DNA of 56,140 nucleotides from Macrostomum lignano (Eukaryota), in the NCBI GenBank assembly GCA_002269645.1, contig NIVC01002031.1:1-56140 (forward strand). Direction: 5' to 3'. The notes below the pieces were generated by a model. The model did no database searches. It was not told the DNA's origin and worked only from the letters and a program-made list of their open reading frames with translations. Shown piece by piece: positions 29,995 through 51,763 of this stretch. The translations under genes were made by a program, and so were the position numbers. Every line of letters starts with the position of its first letter. Positions within the stretch are counted from its first letter, which is position 1.

Positions 29995-32731
29995 ATGGAT
30001 TCTAAATTTTATTTTAGTATTCTCAGTTATCTGTTGGCATTGAATCATTTCCTATCGGTAAGATTCTGGAGAACTTTGTCGCTGTGTCTATCTTACTCAA
30101 CAATTCTATAATTTCTCACTACACTTTCAACAGGTAGTGCAAGCAGCCGGCTACCTGCAGATTAAGTTCAACCGGTACACCAATCATGACGGCCGTGTCG
30201 AGGACGGCAGTCTCTGCGATCCGTTCGGTGCCACCTATGTTGGCGATAATTGCGACCCCGTGTTCCGGCTGAGGGTCAACAAGGGGGGAGGAGGAGGGTG
30301 AGTGAGGGTTTTAATCTGCAGTCCATATTTCCTATTGCTGAGATCAGTTCTGCGTGATTACCACGGCCTCATCTCTCTGCAGCGGAAATCTATACGACTA
30401 TCAGCAACCGGGCGTCTATGACAACCAAAACACCATCGACTTTGGATCAAAGTTCGGCAGCGTCCCGAATCCTGTGCCGATCGCGATGAACTTCCCTAAT
30501 CCGGTAAGACTGTACTCATGAGGGAGAGGAGACTGTACTCACGAACCGCTCTCGGAGCCTTGAGTGATTCTTCATTGTGCATCACAATATTCTAATAAAC
30601 TGTTTGCTACCAAATTTCGCAAACCGCTTTAGGGACACGCGTACGTCAAAGTCGATGTAGTGGACAAAGACACGTTTCCACCAGACGACCCGATGAGCAA
30701 ATTCACCGCCTCGCTGCCTCTCATTGCCGACAATGTCAGGAGAGACATGGAGCTGATCAGTCCGGCTCGACATCACCGACTATCCATAACTCACTGGTTC
30801 ACCTGCTACACGAATTTCTACAGACAGGATTGCAACACCTATTGTGTAGCTCAGAACGACGATGTGAATGGTCATTATACCTGCGACTCGAATGGCAGAA
30901 AAGTGTGCATGATTGGTAAGAGCATCTGGTGATGGCTTGTTTTATTAAACCAAGCAGTAATGCATGACGGAATCGTTTAATCAGAGACTTGCTTGTAACA
31001 AATGAACTGCAGGTTGGACGGGAGCCGACTGTACTCAGCCGGACCCCTGCATCCCGAGTCCGTGTCTCAACGGAGCTACTTGCTCCAATGTCGGAGGAGT
31101 CGCCAGCTGCTCCTGTCCGTCGGGCTTCACTGGTAGCCGATGCGAGACCGATATCGACGAGTGTAAGGCCGTCGAATCGCCCTGTCTGAACAACGCTACA
31201 TGTGAGAACACGATTGGCAGTTTCCGCTGCAAGTGCTCACTCAGCTTCACTGGCGAACGCTGTGAGACCGACGTGAACGAGTGCGAGAGCAAGACGTCAG
31301 TGTGCCTAAACAACAGCACCTGTGAAAATACGTTCGGCGGCTTCAACTGCAGCTGTCCGCCGGGTCTGACTGGGCACCGGTGCGAGCTCGATGTGGACGA
31401 GTGTGCAAACGGGACATCAGCTTGTGCGAACGGTGGTACCTGCGTGAATGTGTTTGGTAATTACACCTGCCAGTGCGACTCTGGATTCACTGGCACACTT
31501 TGCGAAGAAGACGTCGACGAGTGCACAGAGTCGCCATGCGTGAACGGAGGAACATGCGAAAATCGATTCGGAAGCTTCGAGTGCATCTGTCCTTCTGGAT
31601 TTGCTGGAAGAGTGTGTGACAAAGACGAGGACGAGTGCTTGAGGAGTCCTTGCTCGAATGGCGGTAGCTGTGTGAACACCATCGGAAACTTTACTTGTCA
31701 GTGTCCTCCGGGTTTTGAGGGTAGATTCTGCGATGAAGACGTCGACGAATGCCTAATGGCACCTTGCTTCAATGAGAGCACCTGCGTAAACACTATCGGA
31801 AACTTCACCTGTCAGTGCCCCCCGGGATTCGAAGGCAGACTCTGCGATAAAGACGTCGATGAGTGTTCGGAGTCTCCGCCAAAGTGTCGCAACGGCGGAA
31901 ACTGCACGAACACGGTTGGGAGCTTCCGTTGTACCTGCCCGACTGGATTGAACGGAACTCACTGCGAGCAGGACATCGACGAGTGCAAGCTGGCCGCCCC
32001 GCCGTGTCGAAACAACGGAAGCTGTCAGAACAGTTTTGGCGGATTTTCCTGCCGTTGCGGACCAGCGTTTAGAGGCAGACACTGTGAGATTCGCTCTGAG
32101 GCCTCGGTTGGGTCTCCGACTGGTGAAGTCTGGAAGCTTCCTGTTTTCATCGGAATTCCAGTTGCAGCACTCGCCGTTGTCTCCATTGTCATCGTCGTTA
32201 TCTGTAAAAGGAAATCGAGGTAAGAGACGACGAGCTGCAATATCAATTTGGCGAATTGAATTCAACATAAATCTAACCCTGCAGAATGCAATTTATAGCC
32301 TGACATTAAAACGCCATTCCAGTCGCAGAAGCTGCAGTGGTAGCGGGAGCGTCAGAAGCACTGATGCTGCAAGCAATGATTATTATAACACTCATGTCGA
32401 ATTCGGGTAGGTTCAAAAATCTGGTAGTTTCCTCTTCATCAAGTATGGTGGATAGCAAATGTATTGCGCTAAACCATAACTGATCTTCCTTGTTCTTGTC
32501 TGCAGCTCGACTGAAGAGCCAACTAAAGATCCAACTGAAGACCCAACTGAAGACCCAACTGAAGACCCAACTGAAGACCCAACTGAAGACCCAACTGAAG
32601 ACCCAACTGAAGACCCAACTGAAGACCCAACTGAAGACCCAACTGAAGACCCAACTGAAGACGACTACACCATCGCAGACAAAGCGGAGACACTTGAAAA
32701 TGACTATTCAACTATAACCCTATACGAGTAG
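29995..32731 (+). CDS. DSL-family (Delta-like) paralog A: signal peptide, C2/MNNL, DSL, 9 EGF, TM, tail with (TEDP)n
   Basis: Exons 29995-30057, 30134-30297, 30383-30503, 30633-30915, 31013-32219, 32323-32406, 32506-32731, all GT-AG and in phase. DSL: [47 protein letters not shown]2-9 have the Ca-binding DxD/NEC motif. TM: LPVFIGIPVAALAVVSIVIVVIC. Confidence 0.88.
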
Positions 32732-34508
32732 ACTAGTGCCGACTTATATTTATCATTATGTCCATTTGTCACCCAGAACTAAAGTTGTGAAGAAGTTGAG
32801 CGTCTGTTTCGTCTTTTTGTTAGTAGTTTTCTGCGCAGTGTCACTTAAATTTAATGTGGCAACTCAATTACTCAAATTTCTTTTCTTTCTTCGCGGGTTT
32901 TAGCCTCAAGATGGGATGCTACCGTACCAACCCCCTATCTTCATAACCCCTAAAGCACTGGATGTGACATCACCTGATCTTCACAAGCCCTATATATCAT
33001 AACCCTTAATTTTTACAACCCATAAATTTCATAAACCCGAAAGATCATTACTGCAAAATTTCAGAGCAAGCATTTTCGATTCCCCTAATCTTAACTTTTC
33101 TTAAATTTCACATTCATCGTGAGCTATGATATTTCAGGGTTTATAAAATTTGGGGCTTGTGTGGCCCCTCAACGAAGCGATTTGAAATTTTACCTTTGCA
33201 GTAGCAATCGCAATCGAAATATAGTTACCAGATACCTAAGCTAAAGAAATGACAGCTAAGATTGCACTTTGCCTGTGAGAGTATGAGGCTGAAGTCTTAG
33301 GTGCTAGCTATGTATCTATCTTCATCAATTTTGTCTTTAAATTATTTTTGTTCATAATGCTCCTCATTTTATCCGGCATGTAAATATTCATATTTTTGCT
33401 TTGTAATATTCAGATATAAAAATCAGCCTTACCTTCTTCTGCACGGTACTTCTGTACGGCTCTGTAAATACATGTTTGTGGCGGCCACAGAGACGGACGC
33501 GTCATTTGTCTATGGCCACTTCTGATTTGTGCGCCTCTCCTTACAGTTGAGGAGCCCACGGGCTGTGAGAAATAAACTAGAAAAAAATAAATAAGAGATA
33601 TTTCTACGAGGCAATTGTGCCGTCATGGTGCCACAATGCAGTCAAACAAAATCGACACACATACAGTACCAGTGTATAGTCCTTGGGAATGGTTCAAGAT
33701 GCCAAAATCATTGGATGCGGCCAGTCTAGAAGGTAATTTGAATTGGGCACTGGCACCTACGCTAGTGTCATTAAAGGGGTGCCCAAATGTCAGTCTAACC
33801 CGAGAGGGTCAGCCAAAATTTCTCTGCAAAGAAACATTCGCATTGCCGAAGAAATCACATATACCTGGATGGTGATGGATGATTAATAAGTTGAACTCTA
33901 TGGCACATCCAATCAGTGCAAATCATCATTGTGAGGTTTTGGGACATTGTCTTTAGCTTTAATGTACAGCTAGCTATACATATATTGACAATGTTACCTC
34001 GGTATGCTTTGAGCAAAAAGACCAAAGCAGACGATAGAAAGGCAGGTGAATGTGGACAAGAGTTTCCGTCAGAATTAAAAATAGTGCTGCTATTAAAAAG
34101 GGTAAGGAATCTCTAAGATGATTGCAACAAAAAACAGTGTAAATGTAACGCAAAATGAGAAAATCTAACGCGGGGCTTACGCTGCCGAGTTTCTCGTAAA
34201 CTGCAAATGAAGAGTAACTACTTTTTTACTAAGGCAGCGGCCCAAAATATGTGGTTGTGCCGAAGTGAGATTGGTAAAAGATTAAAACGGCATCATAATA
34301 TTTTTGCTCATAACATTCTTGTTTATTCCCATTCAGCCGTCAATAATTCACTTACTCGCATTCTTTCTGCGGTAAAACACAACGGTAGCAATTAAAATAA
34401 CTAGCGATACTAACGTTATTAAAACTGTGCCTTTTAGGATAGTATTCATCGCTCATCCTGAGATCCCGTCTGCACACTCGTCCACATCGAGCTCGCACCG
34501 GTGCCCAG

Positions 34509-35891
34509 TCAGACCCGGCGGACAGCTGCAGTTGAAGCCGCCGAACGTATTTTTACAGGTGCCGTTGTTGACGTCTCGCTCTCGCACTCGTTCACATCGG
34601 TCTCACAGCGGTCGCCAGTGAAGCCGAGTGAGCACTTGCAGTGGAAACTGCCAATCGTGTTCTCACACGTAGCGTTGTTCAGACAGGGCGAGTCGACGGC
34701 CTTGCACTCGTCGATATCGGTCTCGCATCGGCTACCAGTGAAGCTCGACGGACAAGTGCAGCTGGCGACTCCTCCGACATTGGAGCAGGTGGCTCCGTTG
34801 AGACACGGACTCGGGATGCAGGGGTCCGGCTGAGTACAGTCGACTCCCGTCCAACCTGCAGTTCATTTATTTTAGGATTTTTGATTATTAAGGCTGTGTA
34901 CGTTTAATTTGATTTTAGATTCCTATTTTAGTCACGTGAGGTTTGTGATCCAAGGAAAGCTACATAGTAGTTAATGGTCATTCGGTCACGGAACATGTGA
35001 TTGGTATTGCCTACCATTCATAGATTTTAATTTCTTTCGATTGCTTACCTGTCAGGCAAACCTTGGCTCCCTCCGAGCTGCAGTTGTAGTGGCCCTTGAC
35101 TTTGTCATCCTGAGTTACACAGAGCGTGTTGCAGTCAAGTCCGTAGTAGTTTGCATTGCAGTTGTACCAGTACTCCAGAGACAGTTTGTGCTTCGTTGGC
35201 TTTCTGACCAATTTGAGTTTTCTCTTGACTTTGTCGGCTCGAGCCACTAGGGCCGCTGAGAAGGAGTCTATCGGATCGTCCGACGTAACTGGATCCTTGT
35301 CGACCACTGACACCTCAATGTGAATGTATCCCTGCATGAAATTTAGTATTCGTTGCGCGTTCTGTTTCAGGTGCTATCGCGATGAAACTTGTAAGTCAGT
35401 AATTCAGACCTGGCTCATATTACCCTAGATTCAAGTCAAGAAATACTCGTAGTTTTCACTGTCTTGTAGCCATGTACATCTTACGTGGTTCTCAAAGTTC
35501 ATCGCAATAATCACGGGGTTGCTGATCTCTCCGAATTTGCTACCGAAAATGATCGTTTCACTGTCCCAGTACTGATCACGCTGTTGATAGTCGAACAGGT
35601 TATTTCTGCGCGACGCAGTGGGTATTGAGAGCAACGAGCTGGTTGAGCAATGAAGTTGAAGTTTTCACATGAATATACATGGTTAAATGCTGCTCAGAGA
35701 ATTCACCCTCCCGACACGAATCGATCCGCCACGAGTCGGAACTTCGGGTCGCATTTGTTAAAGTGATCGCAGCTGCTCCCGTCCTGACACCGGCTGTCAT
35801 CGTTGATGTAGGACAGAAACCGCAGCGTCATGTAGCCGTTGCCGTTGGCTACCCCTACGCCAGCTAGCAACAGGAGCAGCGAGAGATTCAT
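34509..35891 (-). pseudogene. DSL-family paralog B, truncated: signal peptide, C2, DSL, 2 EGF, then a frameshift (pseudogene or secreted form)
   Basis: Exons (minus): 35891-35707, 35605-35485, 35331-35049, 34855 onward. A 10-nt deletion in EGF3 (~34570) gives ...[20 protein letters not shown] with the stop at 34511-34509. EGF homology ends ~34450 and no TM exon was found. Confidence 0.8.
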
Positions 35892-36399: not shown

Positions 36400-39300
36400 C
36401 ACAATGTACACATACTGAGCGAGACTAATTTTCTTGGTAATTTAAAATCTTGGTAAAAAATCTGCCGATGTCAAGCTCCACAATCAGTAAATTATTTAAT
36501 TAGCATTAATTGCATGGCGAAAGGTCTAAACAAGTCATGATTTTTATCCAAGGACCATTGATATTTTAAGCTAGGGTCGTTGCACTATTACATGCATGTT
36601 ATGTATAGTGTATTATATAATTTTTGTGACAGTTTATTGTATAAATTCGTGTGCATAGCCTAGAATTGGAAACAATTTATAGTGTTAAATAAATAGAAAG
36701 TAAGTTACACATAGTAATAGAAAAGTATAACTAAAAAACAGTAAGAAATACAGATAGGCGACAAATTTATGTCTTTTCAAATTGTAGAAAAAAATTTTAG
36801 TTCTTGGTGTAGCCACAGTTGGAGTAAAGCCGAGAGAAAATTTGTGGCAGAATGTCCATAGACTATTTCGTGCCATGAGAGTCTAAAACACTGCATGACA
36901 TGAGAAGCCTTGCTGTGAAGTTTCAGGGGTTGGTTTGTCTATGACCAGACCTCAAAATAGAGAGCTCCAACTGTAACCTCACCAAAAATTAAACAAAAAC
37001 CTGAATTTGTCCCCCATTTGTCAAAACAAGAATTTTGGTGCACCAATCGGTTTTAAAGTAACTCGGATATTATTGCACCTTCAACAGAACTGCTTACAGC
37101 ACAGTAGCCCATTTTACAGATGCCGCGAGCTGTACACCGTGATGCACCTGAGCAAACGCCGAGCATACTCCGGATGAGTTGCATCCACCTTGAACCGTTG
37201 ACTCCACATGTCGCTGAAGTCGCGATGTGCCGACTCCATCGCCTGCTCAGACCAAAACCCAAGGCCTCGGCGACACCCATATTGTACTGCCATCGCTTCC
37301 AAAAACTGCGGCACGTGGTCAATGAGGGCATGGGCCTTCGGAGTGATGTTGATGGCCAGAGCGTGGTATGCCGCCTCGAACTCTTTGACTGCTGTATCGT
37401 AGCCTTCAAGCAGTTGTTGGCCGAAGCACTTCTGCTGGACAGCTCGCAGGCAGCTGAATGCATGGGCGACAGGCACTCCGCTGAAGGCAGCGTGGTCAGC
37501 GAGGATCTGGCGCAGGCTGTCGACTCCACCAAGCAGTCGGTCGCACTCATTGCCATTGAACTGGCTGCCATGATACGGTGAGCGCCGTACATGAAGAGCC
37601 TCAGCCCACTGTGCAGCACGGACTCCGTCGGGACCCAATGCTGTCAGGCGCTGCTCAAGCTCGTCGTACAGCCTGTTGACAAGGCCTAGCAGCAGGTGGA
37701 GCTCCATGGGTGGCACGGCTTCTAGCGTGTTTGAACTGTCTGGCCAATTCAGCAGTGGTTGCCTGATGCAGTTGTAGAATGGCTCTCCTGATGGCTTTGA
37801 GCTTCGTTGCCCCTCGATGCGCTGATACTGAGCAGCTTGGCTGCGAATAGAGCCGAAAGTCCGCAATCTGACACTGCGATGGGGATTGGCGAACTCTTTT
37901 CGAGGCGTCTCGCACCACGGGCAGGGATGGGCGCTGCTGGCGCTCTGCAGTCCAAGAAGCACATTTGCAAGTTTCATGTCCACGGAGCTGCAGAAAGACA
38001 CGTCTTCTAGGTTCAGCAGATTGAGCACAGTTCGCACGTTCTCATAGTACTCCGGTACTTTTTCAACTGCTGCGATAATTATTAGCTTCTTTACACCACC
38101 TTCGGCAAAAGGGCTGCTGCCGGCCTCGGTGACACCGCCTAGTAGAACAGATGACTGCTCCCCGGACCGGACCAATGTCATGCAAACTTTAAAAAAGCCG
38201 CGTCCTCCATCAATACCAATCTTAAGCAGGAAGCTGCCAGGATCAGGATCCATTCTCCGCCGTGCCAGCACGTAGCCCACCAAGGCAGAGACGTTGGAGC
38301 AGAACACAACAGTCCGCGTTTCAAATTCGCCCGTGCTGCAACGGACCTGGACTGACTCTGTTGCATAAAATGGATCCAACTCGCTATTCAATTCTGCCAG
38401 GCGATGCAGGAGGTTTGGCTCGATCGAACTGCGACCCTTCCACTCACGGAAGAACTGGGCCGCCTGTCTGGTTTGCCGACCACTCAAACCGATCGCATCC
38501 TGCATCCTGGCAATCTCACTAGCCGGCACTGCTATGTCACCAAATGCACCCGCGGAGCACCTGCTACTCTGAGCGGACACGCTTAGCGTGATTGGGCGGC
38601 CTCGAGTTGCCAGCCGAATAGGCGAATCGCCACCTGCGTCTGTTAACTTGGCTTTGAGGACGTCACTAACATGAATTTCTGAACCACGCGGATCACGTGA
38701 CAGCTCAGAGCAGATGTTATTTAGCCAGCGAGATTGCGTACAGGCGTGGCTAAGACCCCTGCCAATGGTGGAGTGACATCTCTGGCAGATTGTGATGGGA
38801 CGAGCAGGTGGCACCTCCTTGTTTGGCGAATCGGTTTTCGGTCTGCCAAGGCGATGCGGCTCCGGCTTCCAGGTGCCGAGTCCTTTGCCGATTGGACTTT
38901 CTCTGGCAATCTCACAGAGACAGCAGCTGCACTTCGGGTGGCCCCTTGTTTCCTTTGTCGGTACGACTTTTGAAAAATCAAAAGGGGCAGGAAGAGCTTC
39001 AGAAGTTCGATTCCCCCGTTCAATATCCAGCAGCAGACCCTGGCATCGAGCACATAGAGCAGCTGGGAGAAACTCGTTCTTCAAATCGTAGTTTGCATAA
39101 AAGTACCGCTGTATGCGAGGTAGAGCTGCTTTGCCAATGCGCTGCATGCCTGACCCGCGCTTAAAGCACACAAGGCAGACCTTCAGCCGGTTCTCTTCGT
39201 GAGATTTTGAGTAGTTTGGCATGGTGGTGTTCAGTTCAAGGCTTTTCAATTCCTAAATGCTGAGATGAGCTGATTTATGCTAAATTAATCATTTATATAG

Positions 39301-39455
39301 CTCAAAAACAAAAAATCTGCCTGTCTGAGAGTGACGCTAAATGCACTCCATTTTTTCGGTGACGCAACTGACGCTACACTGATAGAGGTTGATCATGCGC
39401 ACTTAGGGGTGTACGGCGCCTCAGCTTTCGCTATTCGTCATGCATGTACACTGTG
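36400..39455 (-). mobile_element. Chapaev-like (CMC/Transib-related) DNA transposon, apparently intact
   Basis: Ends are CACAATGTACA (36400) and TGTACACTGTG (39445-39455), a 10/11 inverted match. CCTT flanks both ends (36396-36399 and 39456-39459), a 4-bp TSD. The element carries one uninterrupted transposase ORF. Confidence 0.75.
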
Positions 39456-39620
39456 CCTTGGGGCTTGGGGGTACGCACTCATGGGTGTGTATTTTGCCTT
39501 TAATTTAAAAAATCAATGGTCCTTGGATAAAAATCAAGACTTGTTTAGACCTTTCGCCATGCAATTAATGCTAATTAAATAATTTACTGATTGTGGAGCT
39601 TCACATCGGCAGATTTTTTA
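36454..39620. repeat. 116-bp inverted repeat pair, 36454-36569 and 39505-39620 (3 mismatches)
   Basis: Direct comparison of TAAAAAATCTGCCGATG...GGACCATTGAT with its reverse complement. Confidence 0.92.
37114..39222 (-). CDS. DDE transposase (~702 aa) with an N-terminal Chapa/RAG1-like zinc finger
   Basis: H-x7-C-x2-C...P-x3-C-x2-C (SHEENRLKVCLVC...LPAALCARC). Catalytic-core motifs GIDGGRG, SVDMKL, CPWCE, PMELHLLLG, FNGNECDRLL, ITPKAHALIDHV, WSEQAMESAH. No stops or frameshifts. Confidence 0.88.
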   Translation of the reverse strand: MPNYSKSHEENRLKVCLVCFKRGSGMQRIGKAALPRIQRYFYANYDLKNEFLPAALCARCQGLLLDIERGNRTSEALPAPFDFSKVVPTKETRGHPKCSCCLCEIARESPIGKGLGTWKPEPHRLGRPKTDSPNKEVPPARPITICQRCHSTIGRGLSHACTQSRWLNNICSELSRDPRGSEIHVSDVLKAKLTDAGGDSPIRLATRGRPITLSVSAQSSRCSAGAFGDIAVPASEIARMQDAIGLSGRQTRQAAQFFREWKGRSSIEPNLLHRLAELNSELDPFYATESVQVRCSTGEFETRTVVFCSNVSALVGYVLARRRMDPDPGSFLLKIGIDGGRGFFKVCMTLVRSGEQSSVLLGGVTEAGSSPFAEGGVKKLIIIAAVEKVPEYYENVRTVLNLLNLEDVSFCSSVDMKLANVLLGLQSASSAHPCPWCETPRKEFANPHRSVRLRTFGSIRSQAAQYQRIEGQRSSKPSGEPFYNCIRQPLLNWPDSSNTLEAVPPMELHLLLGLVNRLYDELEQRLTALGPDGVRAAQWAEALHVRRSPYHGSQFNGNECDRLLGGVDSLRQILADHAAFSGVPVAHAFSCLRAVQQKCFGQQLLEGYDTAVKEFEAAYHALAINITPKAHALIDHVPQFLEAMAVQYGCRRGLGFWSEQAMESAHRDFSDMWSQRFKVDATHPEYARRLLRCITVYSSRHL

Positions 39621-39836
39621 AAAACTCTAGAAAAATACTTACCAGGTAATGGTAAACACAATAAAGCAGGTCGCTTTGTACTAGATTTTTTTAACCCTTA
39701 CACGCAGCTCCTGCGCGCTGTTAACAGAAATAGAATTGATAGAATTACTATATAAAACGGTGAAACATGACGTGTGTTTTGCTCGACAAGAAGCAAAATT
39801 ATCACGACTAATACCTCAATTCAATAACTCTCCCCA

Positions 39837-42800
39837 ATGATTTTACAGCTACTCTTGTTGCTAACTGGCGCAAGCGTCGTCAATAGCAACGGCTACATGA
39901 CGCTGCGGTTTCTGTCCTACATCAACCATGACAGCCGGTGTCAGGACGGGACATACTGCGATCCCTTCGGCCTCACGTACGTCGGAGACAAGTGCGACCC
40001 GCAACTTAGACTGATGGCCGACCGATCTGTGCCTGGAGGGTAAGTTTACTGAGCAGTTTTAAAGTAGCAGCTCATTTCAACCATATTATTTAAACAAACA
40101 AACAAAAAATCACCCACTGATTTCGTACAGAAACGGCCTGTTCGACTATCAGCAGCTGGGTGTCTACTGGGACACGGAGACCATCAATTTCGGAAGCCGA
40201 TTCGGAGAAATCAGCAATCCTGTGATCATCGCGATGAACTTTCAAAACCACGTAAGATACGCTCACAAGTTTTGTTGGAAAGTCGGCAAAAAGGACATTA
40301 TTCTAGATAAATATTGAGTTAGCAGATGGGCAGATGTGCAACCGATAGCTCAGCCGCAGCTCAAGGCTGCGTACGGCTGTTCATTCCAAGGAATGGGGGT
40401 CGCTGGCACCCATTTTACAGTTGGGTGAACTGAAGCAATGCAGAGTTAAGTGTCTTGCTCAAGGACACAAATTGTTCCAGTGGGCTTTGACCTTGACCTT
40501 TAAATTGACCTTTAAGTCGACAGTCCGACGCTCTAAACTCTAGGCTACACCCCCTCTCTGCTACACCCCCTCTCTGCTAGGCTACACCCCCTCTCTGCTA
40601 GGCTACACCCCCTCTCTGCTAGGCTACACCACCTCTCTGCTAGGCTACACCCCTCTCTGCTAGGCTACACCACCTCTCTGCTAGGCTACACCCCCTCTCT
40701 GCTAGGCTACACCCCCTCTCTCTGCTAGGCTACACCCCCTCTCTACTAGGTTACACCCCCCTCTCTACTAGGTTACACCCCCCTCTCTGCTAGGCTACAA
40801 CCCCTCTCTGCTAGGTTACACCACCTCTCTGCTAGGCTACAACCCCAATAAAAAAACGAGCAGAAACTAAAGCTACGAGCGTAAAACAAAAAATAAAACA
40901 GAAGCTAAAAAGAGCTGATTCCCAGCCTCATTCGGGTCTCATCACAGTCCTTAGTCACGTCGAGGCAGACGCGTATTTAATAAAGCAAATCCCCCAATCC
41001 ACACCAAATATTATCCAGGGGCATATTTACGTCACAGTATTGGCGGTAGACAAGGATCCCACTCCCCCGGACGATCCAATGGACACATTCTCAGCGGCGC
41101 TGGTGGCTCGAGCCGACAAAGTCAAGAGAAGAGTCGAAATGCTCAGTCAGCCAACAAACCACAAACTGTCCACTGAGTACTGGTACAGCTGCCATGCAAA
41201 CTACTACGGACTTGACTGCAACACGTTCTGCCAACCTCAGAATGACAACGTCAGGGGCCACTACAGCTGCAGCTCGGAGGGAGCTATGATGTGCTTCACA
41301 GGTACACAGCAATCATTTTATATAATTTCCAATAGTTTTTTATATTAATGTGAACTAAAAAGACAATTCGTCATCGAAAAATAAAATAAATGAACTGCAG
41401 GTTGGACGGGAGTCGACTGTACTCAGCCGGACCCCTGCATCCCGAGTCCGTGTCTCAACGGAGCCACCTGCTCCAATGTCGGAGGAGTCGCCAGCTGCAC
41501 CTGTCCGTCGGGCTTCACTGGTAGCCGATGCGACACCGATATCGACGAGTGCAAGGCCGTCGACTCGCCCTGTCTGAACAACGCTACATGTGAGAACACG
41601 ATTGGCAGTTTCCACTGCAAGTGCTCACTCGGCTTCACTGGCGAACGCTGTGAGACCGATGTGAACGAGTGCGACAGCGAGACGTCAGTGTGTCTCAACC
41701 ATGGTACCTGTGAAAATACGTTCGGCGGCTTCAACTGCAGCTGTCCGCCGGGTCTGACTGGGCACCGGTGCGAGCTCGATGTGGACGAGTGTGCAAACGG
41801 GACATCAACTTGTGCGAACGGTGGTACCTGCGTGAATGTGTTTGGTAATTACACCTGCCAGTGCGACTCCGGATTCACTGGACCACTTTGCGAAGAAGAC
41901 GTCGACGAGTGCGCAGAGTCGCCATGCGTGAACGGAGGAACATGCGAGAATCGATTCGGAAGCTTCAAGTGCATCTGTCCTTCTGGATTTGCTGGAAGAG
42001 TGTGTGACAAAGACGAGGACGAGTGCCTGAGGAGTCCTTGCTCGAATGGCGGTAGCTGTGTGAACACCTTCGGAAACTTTACTTGTTTGTGTTCGGCAGG
42101 TTTTACTGGCAGTTTGTGCGATGAAGATATCGACGAATGCCTAATGGCACCTTGCTTCAATGAGAGCACCTGCGTAAACACTATCGGGAACTTCACCTGT
42201 CAGTGTCCTCCGGGGTTCGAAGGCAGACTCTGCGATGAAGACGTCGACGAATGCTCGGAGTCTCCGCCAAAGTGCCGCAACGGCGGAAACTGCACGAACA
42301 CGCTTGGGAGCTTCCGTTGTACCTGCCCGACTGGACTGACCGGACCTCACTGCGAGCAGGACATCGACGAGTGCAAGCTGGCCGCCCCGACGTGTCGAAA
42401 CAACGGAAGCTGTCAGAACAGCTTTGGCGGATTTTCCTACCGTTGCGGACCAGAGTTTAGAGGCAGACGCTGTGAGATTCGCGCTGAGGCCTCGGTTGGG
42501 TCAACGACTGAGGAGCCCTCGAAACTTCTCGTTTATATTCTAATTGGAGTTGGAGTACTCCTAATTGGCGCTATTTCTGTTGCTGTTGGCATTGCTGTCT
42601 ACAGAATTAGAAGAAGGTAAAAACAATTTCAATCACTTATGAAAATAAATTTCATCACAAATCGTGCTGATGGGATTGCATTTACTAAATCACCCGCAGC
42701 GGCAGAAGCAATATCTCTGGAGCTGAGAACAATGAGACCGTATCTGACTGCGCTGCTATCGAACAGGGGTAAGGAAAATATTTCTGCAACTTTCTTCTTT

Positions 42801-42914
42801 CGGGAATCCGAATGTTGACTGAGATAGATTTTTTTAAAATTATTCTATTCTACTTTCAGGCTGAGTAACCCTGCCTACATGAGCACTGCAGAGATCGGCT
42901 TGCAAGAAAACTAA
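39837..42914 (+). CDS. DSL-family paralog C: signal peptide, C2, DSL, 9 EGF, TM, lysine-free tail with NPAY
   Basis: Exons 39837-40039, 40131-40251, 41019-41301, 41401-42616, 42700-42768, 42860-42914, all in phase. DSL: [46 protein letters not shown]: LLVYILIGVGVLLIGAISVAVGIAVY. Confidence 0.88.
40330..40546 (-). mobile_element. Internally deleted CORE-type SINE (copy 2) in intron 2 of paralog C
   Basis: Shares GGCTGCGTACGGCTGTT, GGCACCCATTTTACA and GGACACAAATTGTTCC with copy 1. Confidence 0.7.
40540..40845. repeat. ~21-bp TAGGCTACACCCCCTCTCTGC minisatellite
   Basis: Directly visible. It starts at the 5' end of the SINE. Confidence 0.9.
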
Positions 42915-43436: not shown

Positions 43437-43480
43437 GACTGACTGACTGACTGACTGACTGACTGACTGACTGACTGACT
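43437..43480. repeat. (TGAC)n microsatellite
   Basis: Directly visible. Confidence 0.9.
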
Positions 43481-44620: not shown

Positions 44621-44838
44621 AAATTATACAGCCTGAGGACAATAGATGTTTTATATTTAGAAATGTTGCGCAATGTGCAATGTGTCTGACGTACTTAGTT
44701 CCTTATTAATGTCTCACATCTATGGGTATTGCCGTGGATAATCCGTGGAATTTCCTTTCAAAGCAGCGCCAAATGCATATAAAATTTGAATACATAAAAA
44801 GGCATTTTAGGCGGCTGCTCAATTCGAAAAACCTCACC

Positions 44839-46568
44839 ATGACTTCTAAATTGTCTTTCGGAATTTGCAGTTGTCTGTTGGGATTGACTCATTTCCTATC
44901 GGTAAGGTTCTTGAGAACTATGACGTTGCGTCTAGCTCACTTGAATTCTATAATTTCTCACTACACGTTCAACAGGCAGTTCAGGGAGCTGGCTACCTGC
45001 AGATCAGGTTCAACCGGTACACCAATCACGAAGGCCGTGTCGAGGACGGCAGTCTCTGCGACCCGTTCGGTGCCACCTATGTTGGCGATAATTGCGACCC
45101 CGTGTTCCGGCTGAGGGTCAACAAGGGGGGAGAAGGAGGGTTAGTGAGGGTTTCAATCTGCAGTCCATATTTCTTACAGCTGAGATAAGTTTTGCATGGC
45201 CTCATCTCTCTGCAGCGGTAATCTGCACGACTATCAGCAACCGGGCGTCTATGACAACCAAAATACCATCGACTTTGGATCAAAGTTCGGCAGCGTCCCG
45301 AATCCTGTGCCGATCGCGATGAACTTCCCTAATCCAGTAAGGCTGTACTCACGAACCGCTCTCAGAGCCCTTGAGTGATTCTTCATTCTGCAGCACAATA
45401 TTCTAATAAACTGTTTGCTACCAAATTTCGCAAACCGCTTTAGGGACACGCGTACGTCAAAGTCGATGTAGTGGACAAAGACACGTTTCCACCAGACGAC
45501 CCGATGAGCAAATTCACCGCCTCGCTGCCTCTCATTGCCGACAATGTCAGGAGAGACATGGAGCTGACCAGTCCGGCTCGACATCACCGACTATCCATGA
45601 CTCACTGGTTCACCTGCTACACGAATTTCTACGGACAGGATTGCAACACCTATTGTGTAGCTCAGAACGACGATGTGAATGGTCATTATACCTGCGACTC
45701 GAATGGCAGAAGAGTGTGCATGATTGGTAAGAGCGTCTGGTGATGGCTTGTTCTATTACAGCAAGCAGTAATTCAGAACGGAGTTCTTTACGTCTGTGTT
45801 GCAGGATTTACTGGCACTCTGTGCAATGAAGATATCGACGAGTGCCTGATGTCGTCACCTTGCTCCAATGAGAGCACTTGTGTGAACACTATCGGAAACT
45901 TCAAGTGCATGTGTCCTCCGGGGTTCGAAGGCAGACTCTGCGATGAAGATATCAACGAGTGCTCGGAGTCTCCACCAAAGTGTCGCAACGGCGGAAACTG
46001 TACGAACACGGTTGGGAGCTTCCGTTGTACCTGCCCGACTGGACTGACGGGACGTCACTGCGAGCAGGACATCGACGAGTGCAAGCTGGCCGCCCCGCCG
46101 TGTCGAAACAACGGAAGCTGTCAGAACAGCTTTGGCGGATTTTCCTGCCGTTGCGGACCAGCGTTTAGAGGCAGACGCTGTGAGATTCGCGCTGAGGCCT
46201 CGGTTGGGTCTCCGACTGAGGCTCTCTGGAAACTGCCAGTAATCATCGTCTCAGCAGTCTTGGGGACAGCGATTATCGCTGTCATAATTGCGCTTGTTGT
46301 CTATCAAAGAAGGAATAGGTAAGTGCATATTGATAGAGGAAGCTGACTACAGAAGTGCTAGTAAATACGGTGTTTGCTATAGATTGAATTTATTGATTAA
46401 ATGGCTGCAAAACATATTTTCAGTAGCAGAGGCACTGCTGGCTACGAGGATAATGAGAGCAGGTAAGAATGTGTCAGTTGTTGCATTCCGGAGTCTATAA
46501 GTTTGACCATTGCTCTTCTATAAATGAATTTCAATTCCAGATTCGATAACGAAGCATACGCAGCATAA
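44839..46568 (+). CDS. DSL-family paralog D: signal peptide, C2, DSL, only 3 EGF, TM, lysine-free tail with FDNEAY
   Basis: Exons 44839-44901, 44976-45139, 45216-45336, 45444-45726, 45805-46318, 46424-46462, 46541-46568, all in phase. The 5' half is nearly identical to paralog A. Confidence 0.86.
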
Positions 46569-47332
46569 CTGCTCTGAGTTGAACGCTTAACAGGACTGCT
46601 ATGTAACCTGTGGATTAAACGTTTGTACAAGGATTTTCGTGCTTGACATACATAATTAAAATTAAATCCTCTTAGGTAATGAAGTCAATGACTAGGAAAT
46701 GTCCCTTGCCAATGTCCTCCGGAGTTCGAAGATATTTATTCATCAGATATATACCAGTAAATTTCATAAATTTCGGTGGAGGCATTTGCACTTGCATGCT
46801 ACGCCATGTACATATGCTTGCTCCGAATCTTCTATGTAGATGCACCATGTAACAACATCATCATTTAAATCTAGCGTACTGTACACGAGTATTAAGCATT
46901 GTTGCATTGTCCTGCAAAAATTTGCCATTTTCTGTTGTTTGGAGTGAAACGATTTGGTCGCTTGTAAAGACAAATTTTACTTAAAAAAACAACTTAAAAA
47001 TAAAGCAAATTTTAAATACGTTTTGCTGATATATTAAAAGTGCCACACTGCTTTCTTGTCGCTCGTACCAGATTTTTAACAGAGGTGCTTTAAATAATTC
47101 ACTAGACTAGAGCATCAAAATTTTGAAACATTTTTTTAAACTTTTACTTAAATCTAATAATTAAGGTTTTATATATGTATAGCATTTTCAATTCAGTTGA
47201 ATATTTCATCGTGCGCGAATGTCTAGCTCTATTTAACTATTATACATATCCACATTTCAATGTTGCATTTGTTACACCGTCTCCTAATCCATATTACTCG
47301 TAAATATAATGCGGAGGTTATATTCGGTTAGG

Positions 47333-47660
47333 GTCACTGAATCAATCCCAAGGTCACTGATAGTTCAGTCACTGAATGAATTCCAAGATCAGTGATAGTT
47401 CAGTCACTGAATGAGTAATAAGGTCACTGATGTTAGTTCAGTCACTGAATGAATCTCAAGGTCACTGATAGCTCAGTCACTGAATGAATCTCAAGGTCAC
47501 TGATAGCTCAGTCACTGAATGAATCTCAAGGTCACTGATAGTTCAGTCACTGAATGAATCCCAAGGTCACTGATGTTAGTTCAGTCACTGAATGAATCCC
47601 AAGGTCACTGATAGCTCAGTCACATGAGTCTCAAGGTCACTGATAGCTCAGTCACATGAC
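47333..47660. repeat. ~35-bp AAGGTCACTGATAGTTCAGTCACTGAATGAATCTC minisatellite
   Basis: Directly visible. Confidence 0.88.
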
Positions 47661-47689
47661 GCACATGATGCACTACCCACTATTTCACA

Positions 47690-47983
47690 TGATGACTCAG
47701 TATGGGTTCTGGCTAAGTTCACGGCTGAAAGGTCGGGGGTTCGATTCTCGACCCACACGGAACAATTTGTGTCCTTGAGAAAGACACTTAACTCTGCATT
47801 GCTTCAGTTCACACAGCCGTAAAATTGGTGCCACCATTGGCTGGGGTAATTGAGGGTAGATATCGTATGTAAGTGGCGCCCCCCCCAGTCTTTGGAATGA
47901 ACAGCCGTACGCAGCCTTCAGATGCGCTGCGCAATAGCTGCGGCTGAGATGTCGGTTGCACATCTGCCTATTCGGGCGGGTGT
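47690..47983 (+). mobile_element. tRNA-derived CORE-type SINE (copy 3)
   Basis: B-box GGTTCGATTCT, then TGTGTCCTTGAGAAAGACACTTAACTC...TTGCTTCAGT...GTAAAATTGG (MIR/CORE-like). It is the reverse complement of copy 1. Confidence 0.75.
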
Positions 47984-48674
47984 CATCAATTACTAATTAT
48001 TATTATGCATTTGGGTCCGTAGTCATAGTTTTTTAATTGTGTATTAACTCTATTTTCTAGATATAAAATAATTATCAGGATGCAATAAGTACATAGCGTA
48101 AAGTACATAGATTTGCATTATTTGCATCACAAATTTACTTACCTAGCTAATTTTAATTAGCAGCAGACGACTCAGTAAACAACTAAATATATCCGTTGGA
48201 TTTAAATTATAAACCAGGCTTTAATTTATTTTCTCACAAGTCCGAAATAAGGAAACTGATCTGTATGAAATAAATTGTATCAAAAAAGATTTCTTATCAA
48301 TACTCGTAAATGTCGTCAAGATACTACAATGTACTAGGATAAAGGTGGTCTGACGCATCCATTGCATCCATGATCAACGTTGTGATTACCTTGTACATTA
48401 GAAATTTGGGAAGTTATTAATTTATCATTGTTCGATTAGCTATACAGAAAAATAAAGCAGATTTTTAATACTAGAATATTTAGATGGATAAGTGTACCAA
48501 TTTATAGCAAAATACGTTTTCACATGATATACAAAGTGGGTTGCATTTACAGGGATGCTTATTAATACTGGAATAAGTTGAGAATATGCCAGCAGAGTCT
48601 CGAGTTCAGAAAAAAGTCGCAATTGGTCAAAAACCTGAGATCAGGTGTAGCCTTCTCTGAGGCAGCTGGCGACA

Positions 48675-51600
48675 TCAATACCTCATCGGTTTGAATGTAG
48701 AATCGCTGTCAATGTAAAAGGTGACGCTTCGAGTCGACAAATTACCTTCGATTACTAAATCAAAGAAATCAATGCTTACTCCGTATTATATGTATGATTG
48801 TCCACCATATCTGGCTCGACTGTACTGCCTCGACGGGACCTGCTAATCACGGAGTTGAGAAAGTTAGGTTTATCTGTTTACGGCCTCAAAGAATGTTAAC
48901 AGAATGTTCAGTGTTAATACCTGACTGCCTGTGAAATACGTTCGCTGTTCGTGATGCCGGCGACAGTCAGTATGAACGCTACGATCAGAATGACACCACC
49001 GACAGTTGCTAAGGCAATGATGAGGGTCTGCTGATTCGGCTCCGCAGGTTTCTCTGCTGTCTCGCAAAGTCGTCCGCTGAATCCATCGGGACACTGGCAT
49101 CTGTAGCTGCCAAATTCGTTCACGCAGGTGCTGCCGCTCGCGCAGTCGGACTTGCCCTCGCACTCGTCTACATCGATCTCGCATCGGCTGCCTGTTAATC
49201 CCACGGCACAGATGCAGTTGAATCCGCCGAAGGTGTTCAGGCAGGTGCCGCCGATGCCGCAAGGTGAGGCCGATATCTCGCACTCGTCAGCGTCTGCCTC
49301 GCAGCGACTGCCGACAAAGTTTCCTGGACAGAGACAACTGAACCCGCCGAATGTGTTTTGACAAGTGCCTCCGTTCAGACACAGCGAAGTCCCATTCTCA
49401 CACTCATTCACATCTGCCTCACAACGGGCGCCTGTGAAGTTTGGCGGACAACTGCAGTTGAATGCACCGAATGTGTTCAGACAGGTGCCTCCATTATGAC
49501 ACGGGGAAGTGCCTGAATCACACTCGTTCACGTCCCAGCCGCAGAGGCTTCCAGTAAAGCCCGAAGGACAGTTGCAGTTGAATCCGCCAAAGGTGTTAAT
49601 ACAGGTACCTCCGTTCAGACAGAGTGAAGTTCCTGTGTCGCACTCGTCCACGTCAGTCTCACAAAGACTGCCATTAAAGTTTGGGGGACAACTGCAGTTG
49701 AATGCACCGAATTTGTTTAGACAGGTGCCTCCATTCTGACACGGGAAAGTGCCTGAATCACACTCGTTCACGTCCGAGCCGCAGAGGCTGCCAGTAAAAC
49801 CCGAAGGACAGTTGCAGTTGAATCCGCCAAAGGTGTTAATACACGTACCTCCGTTCAGACAGAGTGAGGTTCCTGTGTCGCACTCGTTCACGTCAGTCTC
49901 ACAAAGACTGCCATTAAAGTTCGGCGGGCAGCTGCAGTTGAATCCGCCAAAAGTGTTGATGCAGGTGCCATTGTTCTGGCACGGTGGAATGTCTAGAGCG
50001 CATTCGTTCAGATCCTCACAACGACTGCCAGTAGAGTTTTCCGGGCAGACACAATCGAATCCTCCATAGGTGTTTAGGCACGTTCCTCCATTCGAGCAGG
50101 TCGGCAGATCAAGTTCGCATTCGTTGACATCCGTCTCGCAGCGGCTTCCGTTGAAGTTTGGCGTGCAGGTGCAGTTGGCAATGTCGCCGACATTGGAACA
50201 GGTGCCTCCGTTGTAGCACGGGCTTTCGAGACACGGAATCAGTCGGGTGCAGTTGGTGCCCATCCAGTCTGTAAACGTATTACAATTAAAAATGCAAACA
50301 TTTCAGCAGCAGTCAACAAACTAAAAGACACATATTAGTAGTGACCTCGAAGCTCACCTGACATGCAAACTTTGTTGCCATTAGAATCGCAGGTATAGTG
50401 GCCTGTAGAGTCATTGCGAGGCTTGCAAAGTGTGTTACAGTCCAGTCCGTAGTAATGGCTGTGGCAGGTGTACCAATAGGTAATTGATAGCCTGTGGTGC
50501 CTCGGAGAACTGTAGATGTCCATGTTTCTCCTTACTGAGTCAGCCCGAGCCGGTAGACTTGCGTAGAAATGGTCCATATGGTCGTCGTAAAATTCGTCTT
50601 TGTCCATCGCGACAACCGTTATTTGTATGCTGCCCTGTTAATGTTAGAAATGTTGAGATGTGGCGTTCTGGTCACAGATATATTGTACTGTAGGTAGCTA
50701 TACAAACTAAAAGTACTAAGATTGCATACCGGATTCCAGTAGGGCATGTCTATAACGACTGGATTGGCAATTTCACCGAACCTGCCGCCGAAGTTGACAA
50801 TGTCCGAATCCCCATAGTATCCAGCTTGACCGTAGTTAAATAGATTGTTCCTGTGGGCAGGAATTTCGAATGGCAATCGTTAACTCAAGGTAAATTCAAT
50901 AACTCTCCCGCCAAAACTACTAAGTAGAATTAGACTAGTAATCTTAGCCCCCACATGGGTAGACAACGGAAGAAGTAGTAAGATTAAAAACTCTTAGAGA
51001 TTGATCTCTAATCCTTGGCAGCTCAGAATTCCCCCTTGAGCCAGTGAAATCCTAATAAATTCTTCACGGAAATCCCTAGGGAATGCCTTAGGAATGCCTT
51101 GGGAATCTCAGCATTCTACATTTATCGATGGCATTTCAGCAATTCCAGCGTAGTCTTAGCAACCCCCCCCCCCCAAAAAATGAGCTATATAATCTCAGCA
51201 AAATATCGAGGCACAGCTAAATTTTTTCAATCCACAATTATTAAACAAAGCATCCCATATTATTTAATCTACAGTGCTTGTTGGTTTAGTTGCCAAAAAC
51301 AAATTCAAACAGGGTCTTTTTAACATTACACCGATGGATGGATGGTTAGCATGTCTGTCGGATTGCTGTAGGGAGCGAAAGCACAAGCAGAACTTATTAA
51401 TCTACCGTGAACATCTCTTTCTAAAGGCCCTCGTCAGCAGCAATAATTTACCCTCCGGCGTTGGTCCTGTCAGCAAAGAGTTGGAATTTCGGATCGCAGG
51501 CTGACTCTCTCCAGGAAAAGAACGTGTCGCAGTACGTCCCGTCCGAGGCTCTGCTGTCATGATTATAGTAGGTGTGGAATTGTACATGCATGGACCCAGT

Positions 51601-51763
51601 ACCGCCGACCTGTAGCAGATTGCGATTAAGGAACCATTGTAATCAAAGTTTGCCATTGCCACACCTAGTATGTTTGCAAAAGGATTTGCGAGTAACTTAC
51701 GGTTCCACACAAAAGAACGATTAAAAAAGCGACCGTCGATGAGATTGAATTTAAACGGCACAT
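48675..51763 (-). CDS. DSL-family paralog E: signal peptide, C2, DSL, 10 EGF, TM, tail with DNHTY
   Basis: Exons (minus): 51763-51701, 51609-51452, 50850-50730, 50634-50358, 50268-48921, 48839-48780, 48705-48675 (last exon less certain). DSL: [45 protein letters not shown]: [24 protein letters not shown]. Confidence 0.86.

Follow-up and report, generated by a model that had tools for sequence, protein, structure and literature searches.

A tandem cluster of five DOS-less DSL genes in Macrostomum lignano: candidate divergent members of the Notch ligand superfamily

The locus and its genes

The window analysed here, a stretch of 56,140 nucleotides of the Macrostomum lignano genome (assembly GCA_002269645.1, contig NIVC01002031.1, positions 1 to 56,140 of the forward strand), contains within 22 kb (29995-51763) five adjoining, intron-bearing DSL genes, designated A to E and oriented +, -, +, + and - (Table 1); scanning the window for further DSL-type sequence yielded none beyond these five. 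The gene models were built from six-frame blocks and spliced by hand. All introns of the five genes are GT-AG without exception, and the frames of A, C, D and E are completely open over 6-7 exons with canonical splice sites. The splice models bear out the original prediction of five clustered paralogs that share a 121-nt exon and a 277-283-nt exon, on the strands and at the coordinates it gave, the limits of the region being the ATG codons of gene A (29995) and gene E (51763). The longer of these exons codes for the last strands of the C2 domain and for the greater part of the DSL domain that follows it. Exon sizes agree with those of P0036, an unlinked M. lignano paralogue (locus L001) that has an exon of ~121 nt and in which the equivalent of the DSL exon is interrupted by one extra intron. 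The tail exons are conserved in phase (84, 69, 39 and 60 nt) and have their counterpart in the 84-nt first tail exon of the annotated P0036; the splice models of the tails are based on sequence and on analogy to this one paralogue.

Table 1. Coordinates of the genes and of selected features within the window
Feature	Strand	Position	Description
Gene A, 715 aa	+	29995..32731	signal peptide, C2 head, DSL, 9 EGFs, TM, 107-aa tail
Gene A exons	+	29995-30057, 30134-30297, 30383-30503, 30633-30915, 31013-32219, 32323-32406, 32506-32731	
Gene B, broken	-	34509..35891	head, DSL, 2 intact EGFs, then frameshift
Gene B exons	-	35891-35707, 35605-35485, 35331-35049, 34855-34509	
Gene B deletion	-	between 34570 and 34569	10 nt, frameshift
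Gene B stop	-	34455-34453	in-frame TGA
Gene B orphan ORF	-	to 34351	TM-like
Gene C, 648 aa	+	39837..42914	B-type head, DSL, 9 EGFs, TM, 45-aa tail
Gene C exons	+	39837-40039, 40131-40251, 41019-41301, 41401-42616, 42700-42768, 42860-42914	
Gene D, 403 aa	+	44839..46568	A-type head, DSL, 3 EGFs, TM, 26-aa tail
Gene D exons	+	44839-44901, 44976-45139, 45216-45336, 45444-45726, 45805-46318, 46424-46462, 46541-46568	
Gene D deletion junction	+	near 45786-45790	A-like up to 45790, C-like (EGF6-9) from 45786 (blastn)
Gene E, 685 aa	-	48675..51763	third head type, DSL, 10 EGFs, TM, tail with DNHTYNT
Gene E exons	-	51763-51701, 51609-51452, 50850-50730, 50634-50358, 50268-48921, 48839-48780, 48705-48675	
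Gene E tandem duplication	-	49339-49969	240 nt, two EGFs
121-nt exon, A to E	+, -, +, +, -	30383-30503, 35605-35485, 40131-40251, 45216-45336, 50850-50730	present in 5/5 genes
DSL exon, A to E	+, -, +, +, -	30633-30915, 35331-35049, 41019-41301, 45444-45726, 50634-50358	283 nt in A-D, 277 nt in E
Homogenised stalk tract of A	+	30997..32172	pairs with C 41385-42560 (93%), B 34871-34449 (92%), D 45822-46248 (89%); blastn

One of the five genes, B, is broken: a 10-nt deletion shifts its frame, and an in-frame TGA precedes a TM-like segment that survives as an orphan open frame. A B-like segment with its third EGF intact is included in P0002, a fused M. lignano gene model. The predicted EGF numbers (9, 2, 9, 3 and 10) are reproduced by cysteine pattern as counts, but the two of B result from the 10-nt deletion and the three of D from an internal deletion that put intron 4 directly next to mid-EGF sequence. 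In C, the ninth EGF has a cysteine replaced by tyrosine, the other eight being complete, and the EGFs of E include a tandem duplication of two repeats. A young transposon lies ~117 nt upstream of gene C.

Domain architecture

All five proteins pass the Pfam DSL profile (PF01414) with 50.6-63.4 bits against a cut-off of 24.2 (A, 51-53 bits; B, 58; E, 63), and A matches EGF_CA at 1e-62. The intact genes encode a signal peptide, a C2 domain, DSL, one plain EGF, two to nine calcium-binding EGFs (cbEGFs), a TM helix and a short tail, a type I membrane plan with the EGF repeats between DSL and TM that is seen in A, C, D and E and is broken in B. EGF1 is an ordinary six-cysteine repeat and every later EGF opens with D-x-D/N-E-C, which is the calcium-binding type, so that the proposed direct passage from DSL into ordinary, mostly calcium-binding EGFs is confirmed. 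The claimed absence of DOS-type EGF1-2 and of a vWC domain holds as well. The published Komatsu consensus for DOS, applied as a regular expression (PMC2504490), matches none of the five genes, whereas it recognises the Jagged-1 sequence used as a control, which came in part from the profile alignment. Pfam EGF_DL_JAG and JAG1-like_EGF2 remain below cut-off in full-length A and are not listed for E; where these profiles do match, they fall on later EGFs and not on those following DSL. VWC was not found in the five heads, in full-length A and E, or in the exon-5 open frames of A, C and E, and the Pfam scans gave no match to an EMI or Nimrod-type domain.

The profile check envisaged in the original prediction came out divided, since DSL is recognised in 5/5 proteins and Pfam MNNL is not matched, either at E<=1 in the five heads or at E<=0.1 in full-length A and E; MNNL likewise fails to match the relatives from Patella and Helobdella. 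A head profile built from all five proteins nevertheless aligns over its full length (positions 5-197) with the C2 and DSL region of Jagged-1 (4cbz, E 4.8e-17); DLL4, DLL1 and fly Delta align with it as well. The M. lignano protein P0006, with a head 98% identical to that of gene A, was modelled with AlphaFold from a 29-sequence alignment (pLDDT 77 overall, mostly 80-95 in the head), and the top PDB matches of the model are DLL1 (E 1e-26), Jagged-1, DLL4, Jagged-2 and fly Serrate and Delta. The profile alignment and the predicted fold indicate that, despite the MNNL miss, the head is a ligand-type C2 domain placed right before DSL. The receptor-facing surface appears altered: in place of the Jagged-1 Notch-contact residue F207, A-D have V and E has T, the two arginines of the Jagged-1 face are retained only in E, as K and R, and F207 and the arginine pair are not conserved in most non-canonical C2-DSL relatives either. 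In D, the last loop of DSL has been remade as CMIGFTGTLC.

Cytoplasmic tails

The tails contain no lysine in C (45 aa), D (26 aa) and P0036 (80 aa), and one in E. A true NPxY occurs only in C, where the tail ends in LSNPAY...QEN; the other window tails have NxxY, as FDNEAY in D, DNHTY in E, and NDYY. The tail of A carries (PTED)x11 together with tyrosine motifs, a microsatellite-like repeat having grown within it. The C-termini (...TLYE, ...LQEN, ...AYAA and ...PMRY) include no ATEV or other PDZ-type ending, and no ITAM-type YxxL/I pair is evident in the window tails. Nxx[YF] is present in 17/17 tails of related non-canonical C2-DSL proteins and the stricter hydrophobic-x-N-x-x-[YF] in 14 of the 17, compared with 1.8 +/- 1.2 in shuffled tails and with none of 2000 shuffles reaching the observed value, in a sample that takes in kin sequences such as three gastropod orthologues. 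The FxNxx[YF] form is kept from cnidarians to flatworms. The motif could act in receptor-type inward signalling and not in ligand endocytosis.

Head and stalk mosaic

Variable heads, stalks of variable length and tyrosine-motif tails had been predicted and are indeed present, and the heads and stalks have different histories. Heads of different types share ~50% amino-acid identity, with dS of 1.7 (A-C), 4.9 (A-B) and up to saturation, whereas stalk dS is 0.04-0.26 (A-C 0.137, A-B 0.113). The heads diverged anciently and the EGF stalk was homogenised recently. The homogenised tract begins 16-19 nt within intron 4 and stops just short of the TM-coding part. Since dN/dS is well below 1 in each comparison (0.09-0.30 in heads, 0.26-0.55 in stalks), the three old head lineages (A/D, B/C and E) are under purifying selection. 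The family expanded through local duplication and inversion, its stalk being repeatedly homogenised or swapped among neighbours and altered in length by deletion (D) and by duplication of two EGFs (E).

Relatives

UniProt already contains near-identical proteins of M. lignano, uncharacterised and named 'Delta-like protein': the head of A is 98% identical to A0A1I8FHT9 and that of E to part of A0A1I8HSG3. In the head, the copies P0006 and P0002 from elsewhere in M. lignano are 98% identical to A and E, respectively. A profile of the five DSL exons retrieved 1146 library proteins at E<=0.001. In a neighbor-joining tree with Jagged-1 as outgroup and sole canonical ligand, all other sequences being non-canonical DSL heads, taken from the 150 top-ranking hits in a library of 1.84 billion proteins and from the clusters to which these hits belong, the window genes fall in a Macrostomum-only clade (bootstrap 99). 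Patella P0181, Helobdella P0121 and others have the same plan of C2-DSL, ordinary EGFs, TM and Nxx[YF] tail; identity to lophotrochozoan and cnidarian relatives is 25-30% in the head, and one Nematostella relative is labelled 'protein draper' by NCBI. 'Delta-like' or 'DSL-like' proteins with varying domain sets have been described in Platynereis, Helobdella, Schmidtea, molluscs and cnidarians, and DOS-less ones were previously reported in annelids, molluscs, planarians and cnidarians (PMC5356439; PMC8166818; PMC11801701). Planarians have seven Delta/Jagged-family homologues that were tested by RNAi, with delta-2 implicated in glia regeneration (PMC11801701). The original proposal of an independent lineage-specific family is thus sustained by the clade, but the architecture was already known elsewhere: the cluster is no new system, but genes of a type familiar from related animals have truly expanded in this lineage. 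What is new here is the head/stalk mosaic, the frameshift of B, the deletion in D, the lysine-poor tails with an NxxY that distant relatives share, and the lack of conservation of F207.

Possible functions

Judging from the sequences, we favour, with moderate confidence, the view that these single-pass membrane proteins form a tandem family specific to Macrostomum, are divergent, DSL-only members of the ligand superfamily and most plausibly serve as Notch ligands or modulators. The C2-DSL head would touch an EGF-repeat receptor, most likely a Notch paralogue, on the same or a neighbouring cell, with partner or affinity set by head type and reach by stalk length. Because the tails are nearly lysine-free and retain an LDL-receptor-like (F/L)xNxxY, uptake would proceed through PTB-domain clathrin adaptors and not through Mindbomb/Neuralized ubiquitylation, and with such ubiquitin-independent uptake the proteins would act as activators in limited contexts or as cis-inhibitors, comparable to the artificial Dl-LDL+ chimera or to DLL3. 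Gene B would be a remnant, either decaying or secreted. A wider and doubtful proposal is that these genes represent an old and so far unrecognised second C2-DSL class, extending from cnidarians to spiralians, in which the hallmark (F/L)xNxx(Y/F) tail replaces the Mindbomb/Neuralized sites and whose members would be naturally occurring DSL ligands or receptors that do without ubiquitin; the modular Macrostomum repertoire, with exchangeable heads, varied stalks, private tails and gene conversion confined to the stalk, might then constitute a combinatorial code for cell recognition or Notch tuning.

The most serious alternative, although we consider it rather unlikely, is that the proteins are non-Notch recognition, adhesion or engulfment receptors, the head binding another partner and NxxY signaling inward via PTB adaptors, as in CED-1/Draper/MEGF10 or the LDL-receptor family. 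The unconserved F207 and arginine pair, here and in most non-canonical relatives, the tail motif shared between cnidarians and flatworms, and the 'draper' label of the Nematostella protein are compatible with such a role, as is the reported binding of a C. elegans DSL ligand to latrophilin, a non-Notch partner (PMC12255766). However, Notch ligands are so far the only proteins known to carry the C2-DSL module, they also make up all the top sequence and fold matches, and the domain and motif searches described above found no EMI/Nimrod-type domain and no evident ITAM-type pair.

It is improbable that the genes encode dedicated DLL3-like cis-inhibitors or decoys, damping canonical ligands in the same cell without activation in trans, with B-type copies perhaps being secreted antagonists. 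Short, lysine-free tails without a PDZ motif are a feature of DLL3 (PMC2171428), the DSL face is divergent, competition with full ligands has been proposed for DSL-only proteins (PMC2504490), and shortened mollusc Delta2 forms without a TM segment exist (PMC8166818). Against this, the conserved endocytic-type motif points to regulated internalisation, and there is one context in which Dl-LDL+ signals; the rigid stalk, 9-10 cbEGFs long, is not easily explained in a purely cis-acting or Golgi-resident protein, and the window DSL, at 50-63 bits, is not degenerate. That the cluster consists mostly of non-functional recent copies with no distinct biology, in a repeat-rich and recently duplicated genome, is very unlikely: the frameshift and premature stop of B, the missing cysteine of C, the large deletion in D, the transposon near C and the microsatellite-like expansion in A would fit decay, but A, C, D and E have intact frames, dN/dS stays low even in the anciently diverged heads, and tail motifs are shared with distant species. 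An artefact of the assembly that set collapsed or duplicated haplotypes side by side is hardly credible even with the close paralogues P0006 and P0002 elsewhere, given that no common pattern of head type, EGF number, tail, intron length and orientation unites the copies, that their most similar segments are only 88-95% identical, and that the best pair reaches 88-93% identity over parts alone. The copies are thus not the haplotype duplicates that would have counted against the original prediction.

Macrostomum lignano is a transgenic model for regeneration and stem-cell research, so that studies of neoblast fate and tissue patterning need to know which Notch-type ligands it has. This one locus illustrates the diversification of a ligand family: heads that face the receptor are old and have been kept, the EGF spacer has undergone homogenisation, shortening or lengthening, and the tails have switched to lysine-poor NxxY forms. 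If the tails drive ubiquitin-independent endocytosis, the proteins would be natural counterparts of the engineered Delta variant. That variant, Dl-LDL+, was used in arguing that endocytosis of the ligand is in itself what activates Notch. Should the proteins not contact Notch, the C2-DSL module would have been put to new use with a different partner. In both cases the interest is moderate and chiefly for specialists; extra Delta-like genes in spiralians are already established.

Comparison with known systems

Canonical Delta/DLL1 and Jagged/Serrate share with the window genes the order of parts (signal peptide, C2, DSL, EGFs, TM, tail) and the C-x-x-G-W-x-G-x-x-C end of DSL, and canonical Delta and Jagged provide their best sequence and fold matches. 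Canonical bilaterian Delta is defined as MNLL-DSL-9 EGF-TM-ATEV (PMC5356439). The window proteins differ in lacking DOS-type EGF1-2, VWC and an MNNL match, in having cbEGFs from EGF2 onwards and a non-aromatic equivalent of F207, and in their short, lysine-poor tails, where NxxY replaces the Mib/Neur docking sites and the PDZ motif; compared with Jagged/Serrate, which has VWC and at least 16 EGFs, they have no VWC and at most 10 EGFs. DSL without DOS is also found in the DSL-only ligands of C. elegans (LAG-2, APX-1 and DSL-1) and mammals (DLL3 and DLL4) (PMC2504490), a likeness of architecture; the window genes form a separate clade. In the C. elegans model such ligands work together with a secreted partner that carries the DOS motif. 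DLL3 acts only in cis and has a small, lysine-free intracellular domain without a PDZ motif (PMC2171428), resembling the window tails, but its DSL is degenerate while those of the window score well. The accounts consulted on these nematode and mammalian ligands describe no counterpart to the long cbEGF stalks and NxxY tails.

CED-1/Draper/MEGF10 proteins combine an EGF-repeat ectodomain, a single TM and an NPxY-type tail, a resemblance of design only: the window head is C2-DSL, with no EMI/Nimrod domain, and of the tail signals only the NxxY part is present, with no paired YxxL ITAM. Closer in its parts is the Dl-LDL+ chimera, described in PMC3241720 after Wang and Struhl 2004, in which a Delta ectodomain and TM are joined to the NPxY of the LDL receptor, so that a DSL ectodomain is followed by a lysine-free tail with an FxNPxY-type motif as sole recognisable signal, and which shows that a ligand so built can send a Notch signal without ubiquitylation. 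Unlike the window genes, it is artificial, and by that account it is active in one context only, signaling at the wing margin and not in lateral inhibition (PMC3241720; PMC3063240). Platynereis Dl-like1-3, Schmidtea delta-1 to delta-6, the Delta2/DSL expansions of molluscs and the multi-DSL proteins of Nematostella likewise have non-canonical domain sets, and the lophotrochozoan and cnidarian Delta-like proteins likewise arose by lineage-specific duplications with uncertain orthology (PMC5356439; PMC8166818; PMC11801701). Compared with these relatives, only the M. lignano genes were observed to lie in a compact cluster of five, to combine heads and stalks as a mosaic and to have near-lysine-free tails.

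Results

Gene models were built from stop-to-stop blocks on the proper strands with inspection of every boundary, and the five DSL genes that had been proposed from the sequence (A to E) were all recovered as intron-containing models in which every intron is GT-AG and every frame closes. The common exon layout held up as well: the 121-nt exon is found in all five genes, and the DSL exon, put at 277–283 nt in the original prediction, measures 283 nt in A–D and 277 nt in E. The end phase of exon 5 is identical in every gene, and the length of the following exon is always divisible by three (84, 69, 39 and 60 nt). Matching exon sizes, including the ~121-nt exon and the 84-nt first tail exon, recur in P0036 (PAA55287.1), an unlinked annotated M. 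lignano paralogue in which the equivalent of the DSL exon is interrupted by one extra intron. A splice linking the second EGF repeat of B to its TM-like ORF was dropped since no in-frame donor/acceptor pair joins the two, and for this reason B is treated as truncated. No extra copies of the cluster genes were detected by tblastn in the rest of the window.

Features of the window
Feature	Position	Strand	Remarks
Mini-/microsatellite arrays	1-830, 1400-2470, 3700-4300, 5900-7140, 8000-10400, 16900-17600, 22900-23480, 27100-29200, 40540-40846, 47333-47655
Macoilin-family exons	5417-6325, 10365-10733	-	Pfam PF09726, E 1e-27 and 5e-44
Spurious 'QNGPTKL' ORF	8195-10243		682 aa
T-box DNA-binding domain exon	20568-20969	-	Pfam PF00907, E 1.7e-42
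Gene A	29995-32731	+	7 exons, 715 aa
Array in last exon of A	32510-32662		12-nt unit ACTGAAGACCCA, 12.8 copies, 97% match; encodes (PTED)x11 in the tail, labelled PT repeat by Pfam
Gene B	35891-34509	-	truncated
DNA-transposon-like element	36454-39720
Inverted repeats of element	36454-36569, 39505-39620		116 nt, 97% identical
ORF of element	37114-39249	-	intronless, 711 aa
Gene C	39837-42914	+	6 exons, 648 aa
Gene D	44839-46568	+	7 exons, 403 aa
Gene E	51763-48675	-	7 exons, 685 aa
Tandem duplication in exon 5 of E	49339-49969		240-nt unit, 2.6 copies, 87% match
GC-rich block	from near 52000		56-61% GC
Non-LTR retrotransposon fragment	54111-55983	+	Exo_endo_phos_2 endonuclease and RVT_1 reverse transcriptase

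The T-box domain exon belongs to a gene for a T-box transcription factor that lies ~9 kb upstream of the cluster, and the exons of the macoilin-family gene are broken up by long, coding-looking minisatellites. Satellite arrays are very numerous and yield long spurious ORFs; one array lies within intron 2 of gene C. The retrotransposon fragment sits in the GC-rich block. Between B and C there is a DNA-transposon-like element that ends ~117 nt upstream of the ATG of gene C; no Pfam domain was found in its ORF, the product of which is 98% identical to an M. lignano protein. The 3.2-kb unit at 36454-39620 has a counterpart of 99% DNA identity on another M. lignano contig, with inverted repeats that are 100 nt longer, and because the whole unit recurs there without the flanking genes, the possibility that the B–C inverted repeat is a duplicated promoter was rejected. 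The protein and DNA matches of the element assign the window to M. lignano.

All five genes score far over the cut-off of the Pfam DSL model. The EGF numbers originally counted (9, 2, 9, 3 and 10) agree with the cysteine pattern, which gives 9 in A, 2 in B, 8 plus one repeat with a Cys-to-Tyr change in C, 3 in D and 10 in E, and each repeat but the first opens with the calcium-binding D-x-D/N-E-C. The published consensus for the DOS motif, which spans EGF1-2 of canonical ligands (PMC2504490), matches the Jagged-1 control and none of the five genes, and neither the Jagged VWC domain, already reported missing, nor MNNL, by which the ligand head was to be recognized, has a model match in the five heads, full-length A and E, or the exon-5 ORFs of A, C and E. 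The five heads, taken as a profile, nevertheless align end to end with the C2+DSL region of Jagged-1 (E 4.8e-17); DLL4, DLL1 and fly Delta are aligned as well. An AlphaFold model was computed for P0006, an M. lignano protein with a head 98% identical to that of A; without an alignment the pLDDT is 37, and with a 29-sequence alignment it is 77 overall and mostly 80–95 in the head. The best PDB matches of this model are DLL1, Jagged-1, DLL4, Jagged-2, Serrate and Delta, and its stalk EGFs resemble EGF11-13 of Notch (41–46% identity). Profile and model together identify the ~150-aa head as a ligand-type C2 domain despite the failure of the MNNL model.

A search of 1.84 billion representative proteins with a profile built from the DSL-exon translations gave 1146 matches at E<=0.001. 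The closest are M. lignano entries automatically annotated as 'Delta-like protein', among them A0A1I8FHT9, with a head 98% identical to that of A, and A0A1I8HSG3, a fused gene model of one E-like and one B-like copy; P0036 and P0062, two more M. lignano paralogues, are 36–50% identical. Outside the genus, the best matches (among them Patella, Helobdella, gastropods, many cnidarians and transcript assemblies) are just 25–30% identical. All M. lignano sequences fall into a single clade (bootstrap 99) in a neighbor-joining tree that comprises 40 C2+DSL heads and has Jagged-1 as its root. The DOS motif is present in none of 157 relatives (the best 150 of the 1146 matches and a few cluster members). 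P0036 stands alone at its locus (NIVC01002776.1:85122-108135), with no other DSL gene closer than 10 kb, so that the family is not generally clustered in tandem.

Comparison of the five genes by blastn reveals a mosaic. A and D are 88% identical from the 5' flank through intron 4, and the heads of B and C are 72–83% identical, whereas exon 5 is common to A, B, C and D at 89–95% identity, in a tract that begins 16–19 nt inside intron 4 and ends just ahead of the TM-coding part. By Nei-Gojobori estimates, dS in head versus stalk is 1.7 versus 0.137 for A–C, 4.9 versus 0.113 for A–B, 0.51 versus 0.036 for B–C, and 0.13 versus 0.26 for A–D, with dN/dS of 0.09–0.55 in all comparisons of heads and stalks. 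These head dS and dN/dS values show that the heads are old lineages under purifying selection, and the very different dS of head and stalk means that the stalk was recently homogenised or swapped, through gene conversion or a crossing-over within intron 4. The stalks also differ in length. In D, EGF1-5 are gone along with most of EGF6, and a formerly coding CAG now serves as the splice acceptor, so that the last DSL loop is rebuilt as CMIGFTGTLC; in E, the duplicated 240-nt unit equals two EGF repeats, and the stalk thus grows in two-EGF steps.

Discussion

The DOS-less, lineage-specific DSL family that had been proposed is real, but it does not constitute a new class, because non-canonical Delta-like genes are already well documented: Platynereis has three extra ones, and Helobdella, Schmidtea and Lottia two each, with untraceable orthology (PMC5356439); seven Delta/Jagged homologues are described in Schmidtea (PMC11801701), and DOS-less DSL ligands in C. 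elegans and mammals (DLL3, DLL4) (PMC2504490). No publication on Macrostomum DSL genes, or on the present cluster, turned up in our literature search. The best reading, to which we give about an even chance, is that the genes encode divergent Notch ligands or modulators of the DSL-only type and form a lineage-specific family.

A role as receptors unrelated to Notch, the other option originally offered, appears unlikely. In Jagged-1, F199, R201, R203, D205 and F207 form the conserved face with which the DSL domain binds Notch, and F207A eliminates binding, according to published work.

Residues of the cluster proteins at the Notch-contact positions of Jagged-1
Jagged-1	A	B	C	D	E
F199	Y	L	F	Y	L
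R201	V	V	Q	V	K
R203	Q	Q	Q	Q	R
D205	D	D	D	D	D
F207	V	V	V	V	T

At the F207 position, most other non-canonical DSL proteins likewise have no aromatic residue; P0036, with a tryptophan there, may be the more Notch-competent family member.

A purely cis-inhibitory role is improbable in our estimate. The cytoplasmic tails are short and nearly lysine-free (no lysine in C, D and P0036, with 45, 26 and 80 aa, respectively, and one in E) and in this resemble the tail of DLL3, a protein that cannot activate Notch in trans (PMC2171428). Decay of gene copies is very improbable. B carries a 10-nt deletion in EGF3 and an in-frame TGA ahead of the TM-like ORF, and EGF3 is intact in the B-like copy within the M. 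lignano fused gene model P0002.

If the cluster encodes Notch ligands or modulators, endocytosis of these proteins would be adaptor-driven, not ubiquitin-driven. An NxxY element is kept in every tail of the window genes (ASNDYY, LSNPAY, FDNEAY and VDNHTY in A, C, D and E) and in P0036 (LENSAY), and relatives from other phyla have the same motif (FDNSLY, FENILY, FENEAF, FRNPTF, FQNPLY, ISNPFY, YNNPLF). In non-canonical C2-DSL proteins of cnidarian, mollusc and flatworm origin (window A, C, D and E; P0036, Patella P0181, P0080, P0082, P0007, P0019, P0023 and others), Nxx(Y/F) occurs in 17 of 17 tails, and in 14 the residue two positions upstream is hydrophobic, as in (F/L)xNxx(Y/F), against 1.8 +/- 1.2 in shuffles, none of 2000 of which reach 14, a statistic that kinship inflates. 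No paper tying NPxY tails to DSL proteins was found in the literature search. The head/stalk mosaic and this conserved tail motif are the parts that deserve follow-up. The tail pattern is that of the FxNPxY internalisation signal of the LDL receptor, and an engineered lysine-free Delta equipped with it restored wing-margin signalling but not signalling in lateral inhibition (PMC3241720, PMC3063240).
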